Assembly (NCBI GenBank): GCA_964247055.1
Contig: OZ176057.1
Span: 434,001 to 498,000 of the forward strand
Direction: 5' to 3'
Length of the DNA stretch: 64,000 nt
Source: Paragordius varius
Taxonomy: Eukaryota > Animalia > Nematomorpha
Program-made: the position numbers and the translations under genes
Shown: piece by piece, positions 27,341-47,428 of the stretch
How positions within the stretch are numbered: the first letter of the stretch is position 1
How the letters are laid out: each line of letters opens with the position of its first letter
Notes under the pieces: generated by a model
Databases searched by the model: none
The model's input: only the letters and a program-made list of their open reading frames with translations
What the model was told of the DNA's origin: nothing

Positions 27341-30300
27341 TGGAGAAAATTTCAATTGAAGGGTACGATGACACTTATGATTTTGCCACCTACACATATG
27401 TCAAAAGGGTTATGATCTCCAAAAATGTTGACTAATGATGATAAAATCAAAATACTGTTTTTGGCTGGAGCTGGTCTTAAAACAATTAATAAGATCGAAA
27501 CAATGATATTTCCAGAAGATATTGATGATGCTTCTTAGTCCATTATTCATGGCATTGGTTTTAAACTTTTCTCACCCGCCAAGTCTGTCTTCGCTGCAAG
27601 GTTTGAGTTTGCTCGTTAGAGAAATGATGGAGAAACTTTCACGGAATTTTCGCAAAGATTAAAGAGTGTGGCGGAAAAGGCTGAATTTCAAACAGAGGTA
27701 AAAGAGAGAATTAGAGACAGTTTTGTGGCTGGATTAAACTTGCAATCATTGGAAGTGGATCTTTATTCACGTTTCCCTGATGCGAAGTGTGATGGGAAGG
27801 TGGTGTCATTAACCACCATTGTCGACATGGCCTTGGCACAGGAACTTGCAATGGACGATATTGCCTCACATGTGTCGTCAATCAGTTCCCTTAAAATTCA
27901 AAAGAATCGGTCGAATTATAATAGTAATTATAATAATAATGAATATAAAAAAGAGAATGGCAATAATAATAAATGGAAACGGAGATGTGGCAAAAATAGT
28001 AAATCTCATATGCCAAACCGCATTCGAAAAAATATGCCACAAATGTAAAAAAAATCATTTTCAGGCAATGTGTCCCCATAAAAAACGTATTATTGATTAT
28101 ATACATGCTAATTGTAATAAATGGGTCACCCAAGCGAACATTTACGCTACGATTAATATCCAAGTTGTCAGTATGGTTTTTGATACTGAAGCTGCTGCTT
28201 CTCTGATTAATAAAAATGTTTGTAAGAGGGTGGGAGCGCCGTTCCTAAAACGTGGCCCCAGATTAACTTCCTACGGAAACAACTCAATCAAACTGTTGGG
28301 AAAACAGTTGTCAATGTAGCAATGGGAAATATTAATAAGAAATTAGAATGTTTTGTGACGGAAGAACTATCTCCGATATTTGGGCTGCCTTGGATCAATG
28401 ATTGTGGTATGATCTTACCGGATAATGTGAAAGTTACACAAATAATATCTAATAATAATGATGATCATAATAATGTATTTAAGCGGTTTCCAAAACTCTT
28501 TAATGGGGAATTTAGTTGTTACAACGGCAATCTTGTTAAATTGTATGTTCGATCAGATGCGATACCAAAAGTCTGCGCTGCACGGCGAATTCCTTTTGGC
28601 ACTACAGAGTAAAATAGATTTGGAAGTGCAGAGACTGATGGACCTGGGGATATGGTCCCGTTGATCATACACAGCACCATGTAGAGTGGGGACTCCACAA
28701 TTAACGTCGTAAATTCTAATGGGGAAATTAGGGTGTGCGCATATTTCCGGATAACAATCAATTCTATGATGGAGAACATATCTGAGATTATATATATTTG
28801 ACATGATGGCGCCTAAATGTGCAGGATCCACATAGTTCTCGACCATTGATTTTAAGGACCCTTGCTTTCAAATTCCGATGGATGAGGAGAGCAAAAAATA
28901 TTTGGTAATTACTACCTTTAATGGGATATTTCTAATTAAATTGTCTACCATTTTAAAGGTTTCCCTCATGCTTTTTCAAAGAATAATGGATGAGGTACTT
29001 AAAGATTTAGTGCCACAATTTGTGGGTAATACAAGATAAACAGATAGAAACCTTAACAAGACCCTAGCAGGGTTGCAAAAATACGGTTTTACGTTTAGGA
29101 AAGATAAAATAAAACATTATCAGAACAATATTACATTCCTGAATTTTGAACTATCAAAAGGAATTCGTCTTGGACAAAATAAAATTGACGCCATTACGAA
29201 ATGTGCGACACCTACCAATAAAACTGAGTTAAGATCGTTTTTGGGATTGCTTAATTTCTATAAACGGTTTATTCGTGGCTTAAATGTCAAAGTTAGCAAT
29301 CTACAAGCACTCACAGGATCCAAAAAGAATGGAGATGGTCACAAGAACTTTGAAATGAATTCAAGCGAAAAAACTTAATATCAAGAGAATCTTTACTTGT
29401 CACTCAAAACATAAATAATAAAACAATAATACAAGTGGATGCGTCTACAAAAGGCTTTGGAGCTGTACTTCTGCAAATGGAGAATGAGAGAATGGTACCA
29501 ACGCGTTAAGAAAATGCCAGAAAGGAGAAAAAATTATTTTGTGGGGAATTTAAAACTAAGGCTTTGCTATATAAGAAAATGACAATATTTTTTGCATAAA
29601 AAAACAACCTAAGTTATGTAAACCTTGATTTTTGCAACAAAGGCCTCCGCGTATGATTTTGATATGAAATATATCGCGGGATCGAACGCCGATGTGTTTT
29701 CAAAACTTCCTGAAAAGAGTCAGACAATGATGAATATGTGGCCAAACAAATCCGACAAATCGCATTCGTGGATTTTTTAATTAATACCCAAATAAAAAAA
29801 GATTGTTTGGAGGATAAACTGTTTAAACGATTACGTATGGCATTAAAAATAATGATTGGTCTCCGGAATTATCCGCATTCAAAGCCGTGAGAAATGATCT
29901 CAAATAAGCTGATGGATTTTTTTATGTTAATGATCGGTTATTATCCCAACATCTGCGCCAAAGCGAATTTTGGCTTGGTTTCATGTTGGACATCTGGGGA
30001 TTGTTGCTATAAAAACACAGCGAGATCGTTGGTGTTTTGGCCCGGAATGGATAAGGTCAGTGTTGCCAGAGGAACAGGGCAAATTTGCGGGAATCCGGTA
30101 TATTGGAAGCTCAATTTAGAAATATGGGAAGACTTCATGTAAACATCGCGGGTCACTTGTGTGGTAAATATTGGTTGGTTCTAATTGACGCGTTCTCGAG
30201 ATGGGTGAGATACTTGGCAGTATTACATCTGATGTGATTTTGAAACAATTGGAGAAATGGTTTGCCTCTTATGGCCAAGGATATTATAGTATCTGATGAT

Positions 30301-31098: not shown

Positions 31099-31446
31099 TC
31101 GACGATATATCTTTAATAATAATAAAAATGGCAAGGTTGGAAATTAATATTTTTCGTTGTAATAAGTTTTGACAATACGAAAAGTTAACAAATGATACTC
31201 ATATTCGTGCCAAAAAACTGTGTCTAATTGATATTGACTGCAAATTTTATTTTTGTTTAAAGTCAAATAGATATGCTAAATAATAAAAAAAGTTCATTTT
31301 ATAATCTGAAAATGTCCTTAGGTCACAAATATACGATAAATATTAGGTAAGGTTTTTTTAAGTTGTTGTCAACAAATTCTTTAGCCATTTTTGCTGAATA
31401 ATTTTACATTAAATACTAAAATATTATTTCTATTTCACAACTCAAC

Positions 31447-34400
31447 ATGAGCCTTTCGGGTTTTAAGTCCTATGTGAATTCCTTAACGATAGAACCTGCA
31501 ATGTTTTTCTATACATTTGCTCTTTTTATCTATGTTCCCGCCTTAATTACACTGATTGAAAACAAAGCAACTCAATCGGTTTTTTGCGATTCAAATTTTG
31601 GCGGATCAGATTTTAATACTTCAACTTGTTTGACATCATTCAATAGCTCTCCCAAAATAAAATTAACGACCCCAAATTTATCTACCGTTCAACGGAATGA
31701 AATAAACTTTAAAACAAGGGAATATATATTTTTGTGTGGAGCACTTTTATGGATTCCACCCATTTTCACATCTCTGTTTCTAAGCATCTGGTCTGATACC
31801 GTGTCTCACAAAGGTTTTATACTACAATATCTACCTCACATAGGATCTGTAGTCGGTTCAATGATAAGCTTTTTTACAGCTTATTTCCCTCGAACACGAC
31901 TTATACATGTATTGCTTGGGCCTTTTGTTATGGGCTTAACAGGGACTTATATAATCATTGATTTGTTTGCTTTTACTTACCTAACTTCATCAACAATGAA
32001 AGTCGCAAAATTTCATCAAGCTAAATCACATTTCAGTACATATTCAATCCATATTTGCCACGGTATTGTTGGGCAAATATTTGGTTTGCTAATTTGTGGA
32101 TTAGCTTTAAAAACTGTTCGTCTAGCAGTTGTTTTCTTGATACCGCCTTTGGGATTTTTTGTAGCCGGATTATACACTTACTTCTATTTTCTTCTGAATA
32201 ATAAAGGAATGCCAAAATCAAAAAAGAAAAAATGGAATTTTAGGGCTTTCCTCAAGTATTTGTCCCCTTGGCATCCTGAATATGAAATAACTTCCAATGA
32301 TCGCGTCAGAAAAATTATAGCTATCGTTCTTTGGATTATCTTGATTCATGCAATTTATAACTTTGTTACGGTTGGTAAGTATATGGCAATTGCATATATA
32401 GCATTTAAATGATAAAAAATTATTATTTAAATATAGGCATATTGCTAGTAAATTGGATGGGAATAATAAAAGAACAAGTTATGGAGAAGAACCTAAAACA
32501 AATGGCGATTGGTTTGACTGAGTGTGGTTTTTCAGAGCTCAATATATATATAAACCAGATCCAAACAATCGAGACCGATTAAATAATTAAATTAAGTTTA
32601 ATGGTGAAAAAATCAAGTTTTACAAAGAGTCCAAAAGACATCATTATATTTTTAGATCCTTTTTTGTATAACTTTAGGTTAAAATCAGTGGGGTTAAGCC
32701 CTAAAATTCATTTTTATTGGCAAATAGTTTCAAGATATTTTACTAATGGAAATCCACAGAAAAATACGTTATAGATTCTTTAAGTTTTTTTAATTTAGTA
32801 TGATCTAAACCTATTCAAACCTTTTATAGGTACAATCATAACCTTGATATTATGGACTCGCCGAAAATTTCATTGGAGATTTTTAAATTTCGCTCTCTTA
32901 TTACTTTTATGGAAAGGTGTTGGTTTGATAGCTTTTATTGGATTACCTCTGATTTTGAAGTCGATTAAAAAATTCCAAATATCTCAATACACTTTAACCG
33001 CTATTTGTCTCGCTTCGCAGATACTTGGACTCGTAGCATTTGCATTGGCTAACAAGAGTTTCGTCTTGTACATAGGTATACAATTTGCATCATATTGAAC
33101 ATTGATTTTCCTTAACTTTTAAACTCAAATAGAAATTTAGAAATTAAAATTTTATATTTTTACTTTCATAGGGGCGATTTTAAGCATTCTGGATGTAATG
33201 ACCCCCTACTTACTCAAACACTTGATGGTTGCACATGTCAAAGAAACGAATATTGGTAGATTATAGTTCAATATATATGAAACTCCAATAATTTTTAAAA
33301 AAATAAAATAGCGAAGGGTAATTTATATGTTGTGTCATCCAACAATAAATACGAAAATTAGAAGTATTAAATAAAATGCGCCATACAGTTAATTATTATT
33401 TTCTTAAGTTGACCATACATAAAAAGGGAGTCATTTGAATTAGCAGTTATTATTATAATTGATGTGGAAATGTAAATTAAATAGGATATTTTTGATTGCA
33501 ATCTAAAAAATTAGTATTTATCTAAAAAAATGGTCGGTTATAAAAGCTAATTTATACTGACATTTACAAAAAGATCCTAATCTTTGACTAATTTTTAATG
33601 ATTCCATTCCTAATACATGAATTAAAAGTTATAAAAATGATCACAAAGGAGTGCCCGCGAAAATTTTTGTAAAGAGGCAAAATACTTAAAAATTATCTAA
33701 TTTGCAAAAATATTTTTACAATTAAATATGTAAAATTTATATCATTTTCTTGTACAAGTTCTTGTCTTGATAAAAAATATATTTTATACAGAGTTGGTTA
33801 TTTTTTGTCTCCTATCTTTTTTTATAAATGGACAGGGGCGTACCGAGGGGGGGGCAAGGGGGGTGCATCATGCCCCGGGCGCCGTTATTTAGGGTCGCCT
33901 AAATGATTTTTTAATAATTAAATTTTAATTATGCAAAAATAATAAGAAGTTTCAAATGAGATTTTTCAGCAATATGGGTAATAATCCCTATAATATATAC
34001 TCTATTATTCACACAATTATTACCATTGAATAAATTTAGTATCATATAAATATATATATTTAATAGATTTAAATATATATGACTGTGCTGTCTTATCTAT
34101 GGTGTTTAGGTTACAACGTTTGTATTTTTTTTTACTAAATTGTTTTATTGGCCTTTAAAAAAAGGGGGGGGGGGGGGGGGGCGCCATAAAAGTTTTATGC
34201 CCCGGGCGCCGCAAATGCTCGGTACGCCACTGTAAATGGATTTAAAGCACTATCGGCCCTTATTAAAGTAAAAACATCATAAAGCTTGGCAAAGAAATAA
34301 CTAGCACTATAAATAGGAAAATAAATACTGGTTAAATTGAGTCGCAAATTTTTTAACATTCCCTTAAAAAATAAAATATTTATCAATCCAATGTGAAAAT

Positions 34401-40000: not shown

Positions 40001-40668
40001 ATACCCATCTTAATAAATTGCGTAGTTTCTTCCGTTTCCCAATGATACAACACAAGTTGATAACAATTATGTTTTTTATAATTGTTATCACAAAGGATGT
40101 GTTAATGGACAAACTAACCGACCTGAGGGAATAATACGAGATTTACGTATCATTCTCCGAAAAAATTATAAGGAAGACGCATTTTTTGTAAATAAGTTTA
40201 CCGGAAAAATAGTAGCCTAAGTTGAAATATGGTCTCAAACTTTTCAAATAAACCACTGTGTAAAAGCTTTATATGGCATAAACTTACAAAAATTCATCCC
40301 AAAAGTCATATACATTACCCAGGGCAATATCTGGCATATAAGTGAGACCAGTATAATTTTATAAAATATTTGTGGTAAAAATTTCTGATTCCTTTTAGCC
40401 AGAAATGTAATTTAACAAGGCCCAAGAAAGAATTTTACCCACATTAAGCAACGCTTTTCTTTGAAGCTTTTTATAATCCTTTAGATTTTAGTCAATAACA
40501 GTTAGAAACCTAATATAATAAAAAATATATACACAAAGTTTAATTGTCATCAAATTTAACTAATAAGTAACAGATTTACACATAAATATATTTTTTGTAC
40601 AAAAAAAAGCCATGTCCCAGGCACTTGGAATGTTCAAAGATATATGTCGAATAAGCATTTGAAAGCAA

Positions 40669-43600
40669 TCATGTGGTACATTTGCAAGATTCAATAATGG
40701 GATATTGTACGAAAATCCATGAACAAAAATTTTTAGATTCCCAATTCTGACAATACCATCTGCAAATTATATAGGCAAAAATAAATTTATTCCATTTTTA
40801 TCAGATGTTGTGATTTCATTTATGCATTGTTTTAATAAAAAACATTAATTTGCATTATATTTCGAGCATTCATAATTACAAAGGTAAAAATATGATTTGA
40901 GACCTTTGAACAAAAACCAAAGTTTCTTAAATATTATCATGTAAAGGATCGATTGTTACTTAATTCAAACTTGAAATTAAATTTATTACACATACCTTAA
41001 TAGGTTTAGATTTATGGAGGTTGCTGGCTTACACATCATACCCGGCGGGATCGAACATGATTTCCAATTGACATCCTCGGTGTGACTGTAATGATTATTT
41101 TCGAAATCGTGAAATGGGGAATCTGAATATAGTTTGAGAACAAAAAATAAGTTTATAGGATTTTAATATTGGTGTGCGATCCATATGAAATTTTAAAGAT
41201 ATAGAATTTTCAAAATGAAATATTATGTTGTTGTGGTTTATATAGCATTGTTATAGTGCAACATTTGAAGGAACTCAATTAATATTTGAATATAAATATA
41301 TTTCCTTATTGTACAAAATTATTCAGAAAAGAACATGACTTAAATTTGAATACTTTTTGTTATAGACTGGTTCTTATAAAATCGTATGATTAATTCATTG
41401 TAGGCCTTTATGATATTAACGCAATATTTAAGTGTTAAAAATCTTATACGAAACAAATTATCTCTTATTTTATCACAGAAAATAGTTGATTAAATAAAAC
41501 TTTTTGATTATGCAAAAAAGTGTTTCTTAATCACATTAACTTATATCTTAAAAGAATATTTTATATAAATATTCTTAATTAAAAGTATAACATTGTTAAT
41601 TTTCCTCATTTCATTCTACCTTTTCATTTTTTAGGAAACAGTTAAAATTTGTATTTTTAATTTATTAATATTGAACGCCGTTGTCCTCAATATCACAATT
41701 CAAATTAACTTATATTATCCGTAAATATTAAAAATGTGATATATTAAAGCAGGCGTGTTTAACATGCTCGGCCTGCAAAAAGTTTGGAAATGTTTGCAAT
41801 ACTCATAAAATCTTTTTAAGAAATTTTGCCAAATAAGTCTTTCCAATTAGCAAGAACTACCAATATAAAATATATATTGCCTATATATTTCAGATGCGGC
41901 CCACATAAGTATTTGGGTTGAATACTCTTTATTTATTTCTATATTATAAATTTTATAATTTAATTTATTTGCTACTTGCATAGCAATTTAAATAAATTTA
42001 AATCAAATTTCTATGATAAATTTCAAAATAAAGATTTATGGAAAATACGTTTTTTTTGAAAAAATATAGCTCCCAAATGACTTACATATCAAAATATTTT
42101 TTGTCCGCGATGACATTTAAAGTAGTTGAGATTTCAGTAATAAATAAACTATTTTAAAAGTTGTTTAATCAAAATTTAATTATCAAAATATTTTTTTGGA
42201 ACCATAATTTACGGTTATATGGTGTTGTATTCACAAGTAAACATAAATTAAAAATTGGCATGAAAAGTTATTGGATAAGTTACAATAACATTTTTTTAAG
42301 TATGTGTCATGCGCGGTTAAAAGGCTAAAAAGGCATATCTTGGAATTTAGACCAATGCTAAAAATATTTTTAGATATTTAATTATTTAACATCTTATAAA
42401 GCTAACGTTAAAGGTACTTCATAAAATTTTGAAATCGCTCTTGGATACAAAACTACTTCGAAAGGTAATGAAGTGTTGAACATTGAAGCGATTTGAAACA
42501 CATAAATTTTATTACATGATTCATTTATGTGAAAAGTTTAAAAAGGAATAATTTAAAAAGATTTAGCATGCAGCTCTATGTTTTAAAATAGCAGGTACAT
42601 CCTACTTTAACTTGTGTAAGCTTTTTTCTTATATAATATGTATATGATTGCAAGACAGGAAATATAATTTTTGTTTATAAATGAAGATTAGCCGTGTATG
42701 GTAAAAAGCTAATCTGTTATGGGTTTTGAAACTGGTAATATGATATTATATACATGAGAATTATTTTAATCTTAAAGAATTACCAAGTCTAGTCATAAAT
42801 TTTTTACTGGTTGTAAAAAATGTTATTTTTAAAGGAACGTTTATTTATAATATTGCCCATTGGCTTTTATCCATTTCGCCCATCTCTCAGGCAATGCTGT
42901 AATAGAAAAATAATTATATTTTGCGGTAAACAATTCGTTAAACCGTTTTCCAACATCTTCGATATTATATAAGTGTTGATCAGAGGGCCCCATAGATAAT
43001 CAGATGAAGCGAGGTAAGGAGAGACAAATATATGCAAAAGAATCTCCCGATAAAGCGATTTTAAGGTGTCGTTCACAGGTTTTGCTGAGTGAGACGAAAC
43101 TTTTTCATGTTAAAAAATCCCCTTGCCATGTCTTCTGACTCATTTCGGTAATTTTTTGATTATTTGATGATTAAAATAACCATTTGTCAGTGATAGATTG
43201 AAACTTATATTATTTCATATGGCTCTGGATTGCCGGCAGGCAGCATGGTTGCGGAAGCGATTTGGCTTTAGTTTAGATGGATACCGGTTTGACAATGTGA
43301 AAGCCATGATTTTTACCGCGGTAGATTTATATCACACTTGTCATCATCCCTCCCGTTTCGATGCAATATATTGAAGCAGACCTCACAAATCATTGCAAAC
43401 GCACCCCCCCCACCCCCCCAAAAAAAATATTTCTGCAGACCACAAGAAATATTTAATACATAATTTTACGAAATCCAAGTAAAGAAATTTTCTGAAATAA
43501 TTCCGAATTTAACAATGTATCAAAAAATGTAAAAAAAATAGTATTTTTGGTTTTTTCAATATTCATGATTTTCTGAATGCTGTTCTAAAAGTTATTTATG

Positions 43601-46600
43601 TAGGACACCCTTGATTTTAATTTATGTGGGTCCCACATATCGAGTTTATTGGTTTTTCCCATCGGTTGTAGACGTTTAATTATTGTTCTGGCTATTGCCG
43701 TTGACCTTGAGTTATTGGGTCTCTTCATCCAATTACTCTTGAACTTGATCGTCTTTCCAGTTACTGCTCCACCAGAGTGCTCACTCTAGTTTACATCGAA
43801 ATTCAACTTCTAAATTTTTGAGAGCATGTTCTACTATCGATAGAGCATGTTCATCATGTGTTTCTACCAGCAAACGTAACCTAATACTTCTGATGAGATA
43901 AGTAAAGCAATGTGCCGAAATGCTTTTGCCAGGCACAATATTCGGCATGATTATTGATTGAAAAAAATAAGTTTCTGGTAACTTTTGTTTGACTCAAATT
44001 TGTTTGTTCAAATAGTGTCTGTATCAAATGTCCAAGTATTTTCGTTTAAAACTTGTCTTTGTCAAATTGGTAATTACTTATAACTACAGATGCTGTCAGT
44101 AGTTATTCCAATCATCATATATATTATACCTAGGTTTATAACCATTTCTAAAGCCATATATGGAACTTGTTACAATAAATGCGAGATAAATTTGAAAATC
44201 TCACATATGTTGGTCATAATTTTTTTAAATAAAAATATCTAATTCAGAATGAGGTAACAATTGTGTCGTGACATACCCTGTAAATGATGATTTTTAACAT
44301 AATCATTGGGTGCTTGTTGATGATGTGGCCTATCATTAGTATATTTTTCATTTTTTAAATCGTTGGGAATCATATCGGTTAGGAGATCGGGTTTAGCATG
44401 TGAACTTCCGTAGCAAGACCCTTCAAGGATATAAGGGGGCCAAAACCGTTTTCCTAAAAATATTTTGCATAAATCATGATTCAAAAACATGTGTAAAATT
44501 AGAAAATTTGTTGTTTGTCAAAAGTTAAAATTTAAACGGTTATAACCAATATATTTCCATTCAAATAGCACAGGACAAGCCGTGTAAGCCAACAAATATT
44601 TATAGAGTTTTCTTCGGATTTTACGAGAAATGCGTAACCGAATCTTTCGATTGCGAGAAGTTTGCTGTAGGGGTATAGATGATGAGCTTGGACTGTTTAA
44701 ATGTTGCAATGGGTCAGACAACAAGGACACCATTTTGAAACTCATGGGTAACAGCTAAGCACAAATTATTTTATCATTAGCACTATAATTTGGTTTAGAG
44801 TTAAAAAAAACTTTCAATTTTTGTAAATTTATTTTAACTTCAGGAAGTTTGATAACTAATAAATTGTATTAAAAATAAAGAATAATCTATTATACTTTAA
44901 ATTTTAATTAACGATTTTCTATCAAAAATAAAAAAGTTACCCTGTACATAGATATTCTATTGCCGGCAGGTAAACCACGCGGGTTTTGTCGAAACCCATA
45001 ATAAAGTATTCGGCTTTCTGAGATGCTTGGTGGAATGTAACTCATAAATCTAGGATCCCATGATCTACCTATATAAAATTACACCAATTGTTTTTAATCC
45101 AAATTGGGTTATTTAAAAACCCCATTCTATATTAGGTTAATTTTTTTTAAAAATTATTAACGGAAACGGTCACAATTTAATTTATGCTTTATCATAATAA
45201 AAATTATATAAATAAGCCAAAATATTAAAATAAAACTTTGTTTTGAAAAAAAAGTTTCATGACAAACTACTTTGACGCCATTTATAATATATCGTCTTCA
45301 TTTAAATTTAAAAGTAAAATTAGAGCTAACATTTAAATAACGTCTAAAATTGGCAAAAATAGAAAAAATGGTATATTTATAATTTTCAAATTAACCAAAG
45401 CACACATGCCATGTTAACTAATTTTCCTTTGTGTTTTGCCTTAAAATAAGTAATATCAAGTATTTTTGAATAAAATTTTAATATTTTTGTTTTATTAATG
45501 TTATATAAAATTTTGCCATGGTTCCGATTACTGCGATAGTATTTAATTAACAGGCCTGGAGCATCCAACTACCCCAATTTGAATGGAGGAATTGTAAATG
45601 TGTTGTTGTATTCAAATGTTGAGAAAAAGGAAAATAACATATTATACTGTGAATTTTTTTTCCATCATTCTTATAAACAAATATTTTATAAAAATGAATT
45701 AGTTAATTATGATATATTTATACCCATAATTTCCTTCAATCGTGCCGGATTCAAATCATCGGGGTTAGGATCGTATTTGGGGTCTGGATTTTCTCGCAAA
45801 TCCGAAACCGGTAATAAGTATTCGCTCGGTTTTGGACGAATATCCATATTTTGTGAGACTTCTGGATAATCCTGTAACGGTGAAATTTGCGTCGAATGTA
45901 AAGGCATATATGTCATTGAATAGGGATATTGAGTTGTTATGATTAGACCTTTTGATGTGGCTTTGGATATATTACTGTTAATCATAAATATATATATATA
46001 TATATATATGATATATCCCATTTACAGTTCAAATTCACCCTTGAACAATTCAAATTCACCCTAAAAATAAATTATGTGTTTTCGAACTAATAAAATTCAT
46101 TACTAATATAAAATATATCTTTATGGCATAATTAATTATTTTTTTCAGTATTATTTTAAAACAAAATTTTATATTTTATAAATATATTAAAATATAGATA
46201 ATTTTTAATCTTAAAAAACATGTTATTTATTTGAGGGTGAATTTGAATTGTTCGAGGGTGAATTTGAATTGTTCAAGGGTGAATTTGAATCGTTTAAGGG
46301 TGAATTTGAATTAATTTGAACTGTAAATGGTATATTCAAACTATCAAGGCAATAAAATGTCGATTTTTCATGGTTTTTAAAAGTTTCAAAACACAAATAA
46401 AAAATAGGTTATATTAAAAAAAGGTTTAAAATTTAGTTTTTTAAAATATTCGTCCTTTAATTTTTACTTTTATATAATTTCAATATATCCTTATCAATTA
46501 TAAATTTAATTTAGAAGTTTGAAAAAAATATCCATTTAAAAGGAATAGAGGATTGAATTTTTCCAATTTTATTTTGTTGCCAAAAATTGTTAATTGTGTT

Positions 46601-47428
46601 GCTATTTGTAAAAATGTTATTTAATAATTCATATGCCAAAATTGTGTAAATATAAATTTTCTGGGATACAAATTATTTATTTGGCAAAACTATAAGATAA
46701 AGGAAAATAAGGTCAATCAATAAAAAATTTCAGAATAAAATAATACGTAAATAGAAAAGTCTAATCGTCTGCCTTTAATCATAAATATTAATCGTCTGTC
46801 AGTTAAACAAAAATCAGGTGAAGAAAAAAAAGTTATATGCAAATAATGAATATTACCGATTGGATGCTGAATATTGGGTCGATCCAACTTTATGATGACT
46901 GTATTTAGACATTTTACCACGCAACGGCGGCATGGCTGGAGCTATTTTAGGTCTCCTAAATTTTTGGAAGTGTTGATTGAGATACGTTCTTTGATACATG
47001 GGAACTATATCATTATTGTCAAACACTTTAGGATCATCGTTCAGGGGCATTGGTTCCTTACTTTGTTCATCTGTGCTTCGTAACATTTCATACAATTTGT
47101 CCCATACAGATTTTGGGGTGGTACTTGTTGTTGAAATGCGATTATCGACATTCGGATGGGATGTTGTATATGAATTGGGTGGTAAATTTTTATAATTTAT
47201 TTCAAAGAAATTTGAGATTTTCATCTTATCATCATCCCTAATATTGTCGGACGAAACATTGTAAAAGTTGCCATAACTGATATCGAAATCCAACGAATTG
47301 TATCCATTGTTTCGAAGGTTGGACGATATATTTTTATTTATAATATTATATTTTGGTTTATTTTCCAGTGTTTCAATTATATTTATCATAAGTATGATCT
47401 GGAATATTATTGATGAAATCAAGTGCAT
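40669..47428 (-). CDS. nog: Noggin-family secreted cystine-knot protein, 517 aa; exons 47428-46857, 45974-45724, 45068-44941, 44754-44547, 44453-44277, 41122-40996, 40759-40669
   Basis: Signal peptide MHLISSIIFQIILMINIIET. Clip segment IRPKPSEYLLPVSDLRENPDPKYDPNPDDLNPARLKEIMG, then WDPRFMS, basic RKIRLRISRKIRRKL, YTACPVLFEWKYIGKRFWPPYILEGSC, SCSIPPGMMCKP, LLRWYC and CSWIFVQYPIIESCKC. All junctions are GT-AG and in phase; total 1554 nt. Confidence 0.95.
42840..43950 (-). mobile_element. Decayed mariner transposase inside noggin intron 5
   Basis: Fragments in mariner order: MPNIVP..FRHI, KLDMWDPHKL (WVPHEL), LHR..DDDK (first Asp), KPNRF, RRHGK..HEKVSSHSAKPVNDTL, SPYLASSDY (YSPDLAPSDY), LPERW. 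TIRs were not confidently found. Confidence 0.85.

Follow-up and report, generated by a model that had tools for sequence, protein, structure and literature searches.

Antagonists of bone morphogenetic proteins (BMPs) are classified by the size of the ring in their cystine knot. This ring comprises 10 residues in noggin, 8 residues in TGF-beta, VEGF and hCG, and 14 residues in NGF (PMC3592873), and the NGF-type knots, whose ring is the largest listed in Table 1 of that study, indicate that rings of more than 8-10 residues can exist. The C-X5-C motif that gives noggin its 10-residue ring is reported to be conserved between Hydra and human (10.1101/510602), within the overall pattern C-X22-C-X5-C-X7-C-X14-C-Xn-C-X12-CXCXC. 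Canonical noggins carry a clip directly after the signal peptide, in which Pro35, Leu46 and Glu48 of the human protein have been named as the critical residues (PMC9071555). The same superfamily contains the noggin-like proteins (planarian nlg, aphid ApNL1 and ApNL2) and Trunk/PTTH, which are noggin-domain proteins with lineage-specific insertions. Noggin-likes are described as variable in length and without a conserved clip (PMC9071555), with extra residues between Cys5 and Cys6 in aphid NL1 and NL2, and Trunk and PTTH, which diverge in their cysteine pattern, have neither a clip nor the RFWP and QYP motifs (PMC9071555 Fig. S1). No paper mentioning a nematomorph noggin was found in our literature search. 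Here we describe a noggin gene located on the minus strand of a 64,000-nucleotide stretch of the genome of the horsehair worm Paragordius varius (contig OZ176057.1, positions 434,001 to 498,000; hereafter the window, to whose own numbering all coordinates refer), which encodes 67 residues between Cys2 and Cys3, where canonical noggins have five.

The gene extends from 47428 to 40669 and consists of seven exons and six introns, all of them with GT..AG ends, that together give a complete open reading frame (ORF) of 517 amino acids (aa) in a window with a GC content of 27%. This model was assembled by hand with the ortholog of a second horsehair worm, Gordionus, as guide; database searches with the window gene were made exon by exon, and the Gordionus protein was used as a proxy for the full-length product. 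Matches to the Pfam Noggin profile (PF05806) were obtained with exons 2, 4, 5 and 6 (40.5, 31.9, 14.2 and 23.0 bits), covering the consecutive profile positions 18-62, 105-144, 145-159 and 158-181. The whole protein contains eight cysteines, with the spacing 22/67/7/14/8/12/1. Compared with the noggin motif, which it does not match, X5 has become X67, and the remaining intervals are canonical: the spacing is 22/5/7/14/7/12/1/1 in coelacanth and chick noggins and 22/5/7/14/8/12/1/1 in scallop noggin. The interval between Cys2 and Cys3 was exactly 5 residues in each of the 118 other noggins that we retrieved, mostly vertebrate sequences.

The extra residues are encoded on both sides of an intron. 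The conserved part of exon 5 (44453-44413; KRFWPPYILEGSC, Pfam profile 145-159) ends in ..ILEGSC, the last residue of which is Cys2 (codon 44415-44413), and the rest of the exon (44412-44277), encoding the first 45 loop residues and the first base of an Asp codon, stays open until the donor AGG/GTATGT (the slash marks the exon border; whole exon 44453-44277, acceptor TTTTTAG/). Intron 5 (44276-41123; 3154 nt, GT..AG, GC 0.28) lies inside the loop-coding region in phase 1 and splits the Asp codon as G/AT. Exon 6 (41122-40996; acceptor TATTCAG/, donor AAG/GTATGT) supplies the last 22 loop residues (41122-41058), namely the D of the split codon followed by SPFHDF...DVNWKS, and continues with Cys3 (codon 41057-41055, in CSIPPGMMC..) and Cys4 in its conserved part (41057-40996; CSIPPGMMCKPATSINLNLL), which aligns to residues 155-177 of human noggin (1M4U_A). 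In the Pfam alignment, residues 2-16 of exon 5 match profile positions 145-159 and residues 18-41 of exon 6 match positions 158-181, the extra residues falling in a single gap of the profile, and human noggin (PDB 1M4U) can be aligned to the flanks in exons 4 and 6. Rather than an ordinary surface loop, the Cys2-Cys3 segment makes up one side of the cystine-knot ring, and the ring calculated formally from the spacing would comprise 72 residues in the window protein and 84 in its Gordionus ortholog.

Outside this segment the protein has the hallmarks of the family. Exon 2 (45974-45724) encodes the end of an N-terminal extension and the noggin clip (IRPKPSEYLLPVSDLRENPDPKYDP...), which matches positions 18-62 of the Pfam profile with an E-value of 3.6e-10 and reads RPKPS...DLRENPDP, compared with RPAPS...DLIEHPDP in human noggin, the equivalents of Pro35, Leu46 and Glu48 being kept. 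Exon 4 (44754-44547) encodes a Ser-rich linker, a basic heparin-type patch (RNRKIRLRISRKIRRK) and Cys1 (CPVLFEW); it covers profile positions 105-144 and residues 108-139 of 1M4U_A, and in this alignment the basic heparin-binding stretch ahead of Cys1, RNRKIRLRISRKIRRKL, faces KQRLSKKLRRKL of 1M4U. Canonical noggins (human NOG, PDB 1M4U and 7AG0; fish, bird and mollusc proteins) share with the window protein the Pfam match, the clip, the basic patch and the spacing 22/-/7/14/7-8/12/1, and their fold is predicted for the Gordionus ortholog, but they have an X5 ring segment and a ninth cysteine, whereas the window protein has X67 and lacks Cys9. The window protein is a divergent noggin ortholog that departs from two formal features of noggins, ring size and Cys9. 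Identity as a noggin-like protein was ruled out by the 8-aa interval between Cys5 and Cys6 together with the conserved clip, and identity as Trunk/PTTH, the Torso ligand, by the presence of RFWPPY, the clip and QYPII. Our literature search found no paper stating where the insertion of planarian nlg lies, and the aphid alignment of PMC9071555 was used for this comparison. No second noggin gene was found within the window.

What the first-pass annotation had proposed from the sequence held up in part. It had described a noggin in which 67 residues, encoded to either side of an intron of about 3.15 kb, are inserted between Cys2 and Cys3 (45 + 22 aa and 3154 nt in our model). The coordinates it gave, 40996 and 44453, coincide with the end of exon 6 and the start of exon 5, and its numbering of these exons agrees with ours. 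We likewise found the clip residues and the basic patch retained, the five-residue interval general among canonical noggins (118/118), the Cys5-Cys6 interval normal (8 aa) and the insertion site unlike that of noggin-likes, in which the extra residues of aphid NL1/NL2 come after Cys5. Its suggestion of a different variant class is borne out by an insertion site unlike that of noggin-likes, but the variant is not unique, as 79 aa occupy this site in Gordionus; to call the locus a new system was an overstatement, since the protein is known and only its form is variant.

A search with the clip exon among 1.84 billion representative sequences returned one match, a protein of 527 aa from Gordionus sp. 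m RMFG-2023 (G. montsenyensis), annotated as "uncharacterized protein LOC135922317" (XP_065312778.1, also CAK9291246-8; hereafter P0001). A full-length search with P0001 among the same representatives retrieved only itself and no further nematomorph sequences, and the nematomorph comparison accordingly comprises two sequences, the window protein and that of Gordionus. P0001 scores 190 bits against Pfam Noggin. The clip exon is 65% identical to its residues 251-293, and by region the identity amounts to 61% in the clip, 55% in the part encoded by exon 4, 69% before the loop and 80% after it. The Gordionus protein has 79 N/D/H-rich residues between Cys2 and Cys3 (spacing 22/79/...), at the same site as in the window protein; when it was aligned to 1M4U with phmmer, 75 residues of P0001 faced one human noggin residue between the two cysteines. 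The two loops share their first three residues (YGS), a final (K/R)S and the N/D/H-rich make-up, and are otherwise unalignable, with no significant similarity (z = 1.2).

The genes themselves are also differently built. The Gordionus gene (L001:10001-11805) has one intron of 212 nt and encodes its loop within one continuous exon, whereas the window gene has six introns of 93-3154 nt, one of them splitting the loop. The only intron common to both is the phase-0 intron after MY[R/K], at which exon 3 of the window gene ends (45068-44941; ..WDPRFMS..YYGFRQNPRGLPAGNRISMYR). Synonymous sites are saturated between the two genes, and the ratio of nonsynonymous to synonymous rates (dN/dS) in the core is 0-0.17, which indicates two functional genes that separated long ago; as judged from these substitution rates, the noggin core is under strong purifying selection. 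The gene in the window is a real noggin carrying a 67-residue loop at Cys2-Cys3, a lineage-specific variant and not an artifact. Because the Gordionus ortholog has a loop at the same site, the loop can be regarded, on this two-species comparison, as a trait of the lineage shared by at least two horsehair worms.

Composition, reading frame and splice signals all point to a coding loop. The loop-coding DNA has a GC content of 0.33-0.37, compared with 0.31-0.42 in the other exons and 0.17-0.28 in the six introns. For the exon 5 loop part (GC 0.35), 4% of shuffled sequences keep the frame open, and for the complete loop the chance of an open frame in shuffled DNA is about 0.01 in the window and about 0.002 in Gordionus, giving a joint chance of about 2e-5. 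An open frame of 67-79 codons at the same site in both genes, despite saturated synonymous sites, is best explained by translation, and we infer that the loop is translated in vivo. We enumerated every GT in exon 5 past Cys2 and every AG ahead of Cys3: the 67-aa model uses the strongest donor (AGG/GTATGT) and the strongest acceptor (TATATTCAG), shorter in-frame products would contain loops of 24, 44 or 56 residues only, all from poor sites, and none of the GT/AG pairs enumerated in the window yields a Cys2-Cys3 segment of 5-6 residues. An early donor at 44406 has the exon 6 acceptor at 41122 as its sole in-frame partner (24 aa), and there is no AG from 41075 to Cys3 and no in-frame acceptor nearer Cys3 than that of exon 6. 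Judging from these sites, the loop in the window species is predicted not to be removable by splicing. The sequence agrees with that of an independent DNA run, of low coverage, from a near-identical organism, whose one difference in exon 5 (44290), worked out by hand, falls on the third base of an Asn codon (AAT to AAC) and would be synonymous.

The AlphaFold2 model of residues 245-527 of P0001 has a predicted local distance difference test score (pLDDT) of about 90 in the core and below 50 in the loop, which is predicted to be disordered, and a Foldseek search with this model placed 1M4U_A at the top (E 7.7e-14; template modeling score 0.67 by target). The disulfide pattern of the window protein we infer by analogy with noggin. 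Secreted BMP antagonism is most likely the function, and it is the default reading because the clip, the basic patch and the other knot spacings are conserved under constraint. We postulate that the loop arose before the split of the two horsehair-worm lineages, has stayed in frame ever since and would form a translated, intrinsically disordered and fast-evolving excursion out of the knot ring. Pairing of the beta-finger and knot halves would be that of noggin, and all three disulfides of the knot could form, the loop bulging out beside the C-terminal dimer contact; the ring would be enlarged to a 72-residue macrocycle (84 residues in Gordionus), in which the threading disulfide would no longer be tightly enclosed. 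In such an arrangement the loop would be a tolerated or modulatory appendage and not a new binding module; it might, for example, influence sterics, dimer geometry or retention in the matrix. It is probably such an appendage, which we favor over a ligand, pH or metal module because the loop is unconserved, predicted to be disordered and made of residues with AT-rich codons, in which it is rich, in a genome of 27% GC; the Gordionus genome has a GC content of 26.9% (10.1101/2023.06.26.546503). A function specific to ligand, pH or metal would be no more likely than a tolerated low-complexity expansion, and the His content of the loop, 12% in the window protein and 6% in Gordionus, gives weak support to the metal idea.

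Two further traits set the window protein apart from canonical noggins. Between the signal-like start and the clip there is an N-terminal extension of about 230 aa (47428-46857 and 45974-45872), absent from canonical noggins and shared with Gordionus (about 250 aa, P0001 residues 1-250) at 24% identity, with the conserved islets NQHFQKF and DDP[KQ]V; no obvious furin site was seen in it. Exon 1 (47428-46857) provides the start codon, the signal-like hydrophobic N-terminus and most of the extension in a 222-codon open frame. Its junction with exon 2 is the sole uncertain one of the gene: several in-frame pairs were enumerated there, including an alternative donor at 46890 for the uncertain 3' boundary of exon 1 and an alternative acceptor at 45871 for exon 2. 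At the other end, exon 7 (40759-40669), of which an independent DNA contig (run X5) spans 40553-40707 with 0 differences, encodes Cys5 to Cys8 (WYCQNWESKNFCSWIFVQYPIIESCKC) and then TT and a stop codon. The protein ends in CKC-T-T-stop (40669-40677), the Gordionus TGT being ACA here (two substitutions), and the ninth, dimer cysteine is lost in the window species, whereas Gordionus keeps the final Cys (CKCSC). In human noggin Cys232 forms the interchain disulfide and the ring adjoins this C-terminal link (PMC3592873), and Cys232Trp causes human disease (PMC4972895). Because Cys9 is gone and an even number of cysteines (8) is left, the window protein may be a non-covalent dimer or a monomer.

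Taking all this together, we consider it probable that the gene encodes a noggin with a translated, disordered, in-frame loop, in which BMP antagonism is kept and the loop is tolerated or modulatory. A number of points weigh against this explanation. The survey of 118 noggins consisted mostly of vertebrate sequences, and the structure model is that of the Gordionus ortholog and not of the window protein, with the disulfide topology assumed from noggin. A search of RNA runs found none containing the gene, and three runs presumed to be RNA and carrying the same species label had no contig on its exons, the sole match in an RNA run being a 31-letter contig of 90-95% likeness inside intron 5. The loops of the two species are unalike, and their N/D/H make-up fits an AT mutational bias and need not reflect selection for a specific function. 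Finally, one of the author-annotated isoforms of Gordionus (CAK9291247.1, P0003, 454 aa) lacks the loop, 219 nt with GT..AG ends (L001:11425-11643, G/GTAATG ... ACAAAG/TG) having been removed to leave C-YGSVRS-C, a near-canonical ring segment of 6 aa. The same interval is exon in RefSeq and in two author isoforms and intron in this one. The Gordionus annotation combines two BRAKER runs, one based on RNA-seq and the other on alignments of metazoan proteins (10.1101/2023.06.26.546503); the evidence base of P0003 is ambiguous, and the loop may be optional at least in Gordionus.

That isoform is an argument for viewing the loop as a segment that alternative splicing can keep or omit (an exitron or exonized intron), derived from an ancestral phase-1 intron right after C-Y-G-S; horsehair worms would then make both a canonical and a loop-bearing noggin, the latter perhaps as the minor form. 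P0003 loses exactly 219 nt and is left with C-YGSVRS-C, an A-rich acceptor is likewise found at the real Gordionus intron, which makes the P0003 sites plausible, and in the window gene a phase-1 intron lies inside the loop, with a weak phase-1 donor (GAA/GTTCAC) one codon off the position of the Gordionus donor. The protein-homology BRAKER run, however, could by itself have created the P0003 intron, RefSeq contains only the long Gordionus form (in a cluster with a single RefSeq entry), the shortest in-frame product in the window would still carry a 24-aa loop from a poor donor, and a pure intron is not expected to remain open and a multiple of three across a saturated divergence. P0003 complicates the picture but is in our view not decisive, because canonical noggins aligned at this site would alone lead to an intron being called over the insertion; at L001:11425-11643, homology-guided callers may have spliced out an insertion specific to the lineage. 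A splice that removes the loop, which the first-pass annotation had named as a refutation of its claim, is annotated in Gordionus, perhaps as an artifact of homology, and no equivalent in-frame splice exists in the window. On balance we regard an optional loop as unlikely, if still deserving serious attention. The phase of intron 5 and the weak GT would agree with the speculative idea that the loop began as an old intron that was exonized. An extended version, in which horsehair worms toggle the size of the knot ring by keeping an exonized-intron loop (72-84-residue ring) or splicing it out (10-11), with the loop fixed and the covalent dimer link lost in the window species, appears doubtful to us. 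AT-rich genomes also give many false exon extensions, and the RNA runs searched gave no contig on the exons; the extra residues might not be protein at all, a true intron running from just past Cys2 to just ahead of Cys3 through frames open by chance; but no in-frame GT/AG pair makes a canonical ring segment, the 67-aa model has the best donor and acceptor, the loop DNA resembles exons in GC content, the joint chance for two species is that given above and the Gordionus loop lies in a single exon, which makes this explanation very improbable.

A translated loop could also belong to a protein that has changed its job, losing BMP antagonism to become a ligand or a matrix protein as happened with Trunk, PTTH and aphid NL2. 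Switches to receptor tyrosine kinase signaling have occurred within the noggin family (PMC9071555), and the ring segment, the N-terminus and the state of Cys9 are atypical in the window protein; yet its key clip residues and basic patch are under strong purifying selection, function-switched proteins have no clip (PMC9071555), and the noggin fold is predicted for the ortholog, so that we judge such a change to be distinctly unlikely. Even less can be said for a decaying gene or a pseudogene in the making. The odd loop and the loss of Cys9, a site of human disease mutation (Cys232Trp), could be taken as signs of relaxed constraint, and no RNA was detected, but the complete ORF, the intact splice sites, the core dN/dS of 0-0.17 and the presence of exactly eight cysteines, so that none is unpaired, make decay hardly credible. 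We retain the explanation of a noggin with a translated, tolerated or modulatory loop.

Other features of the window were recorded within and around the gene. In intron 5, short ORFs on both strands at 42840-43400 resemble transposase remnants by eye, but a mariner remnant is unsupported, as a Pfam scan of the intron 5 ORFs gave nothing at E <= 0.01; the same intron contains a segment moderately repeated in run X5 (42200-42399) and a C-rich tract followed by a short A run (about 43403-43427). Introns 2 and 1 harbor sequences of very high copy number in run X5 (45000-45600 and 46000-46400, respectively), with a summed contig depth of thousands to tens of thousands versus about 2 elsewhere, and there are an AT run at 45984-46016 and a 21-bp tandem repeat at 46234-46312. 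Similar repeat ORFs of the "NSNSP" type occur elsewhere in the window. On the plus strand, a 330-codon open frame (31420-32409) falls in the protein atlas into clusters of MFS / proton-coupled folate transporter-like proteins of mostly arthropod taxa (score 0.98), and a cluster of open frames of 112-168 codons in several frames (27620-29375) is possibly a degraded mobile element; a Pfam scan of the ORFs at 27.6-32.4 kb found no match at E <= 0.01.

Nothing is known about BMP signaling in Nematomorpha (PMC11226491), and the gene described here offers a first look at the regulators of this pathway in the phylum. A noggin with 67-79 residues inside its ring and the rest of the molecule constrained is a natural experiment on how far the ring of a growth-factor-type knot can open without loss of the fold. 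If horsehair worms did toggle the size of the ring, one gene would give rise to a canonical noggin and to a loose-ring, loop-bearing noggin, differing in BMP affinity, matrix binding or dimer state. Should the loop be merely tolerated low-complexity sequence, it would still be useful for annotation, as homology-guided callers may wrongly splice out such loops.

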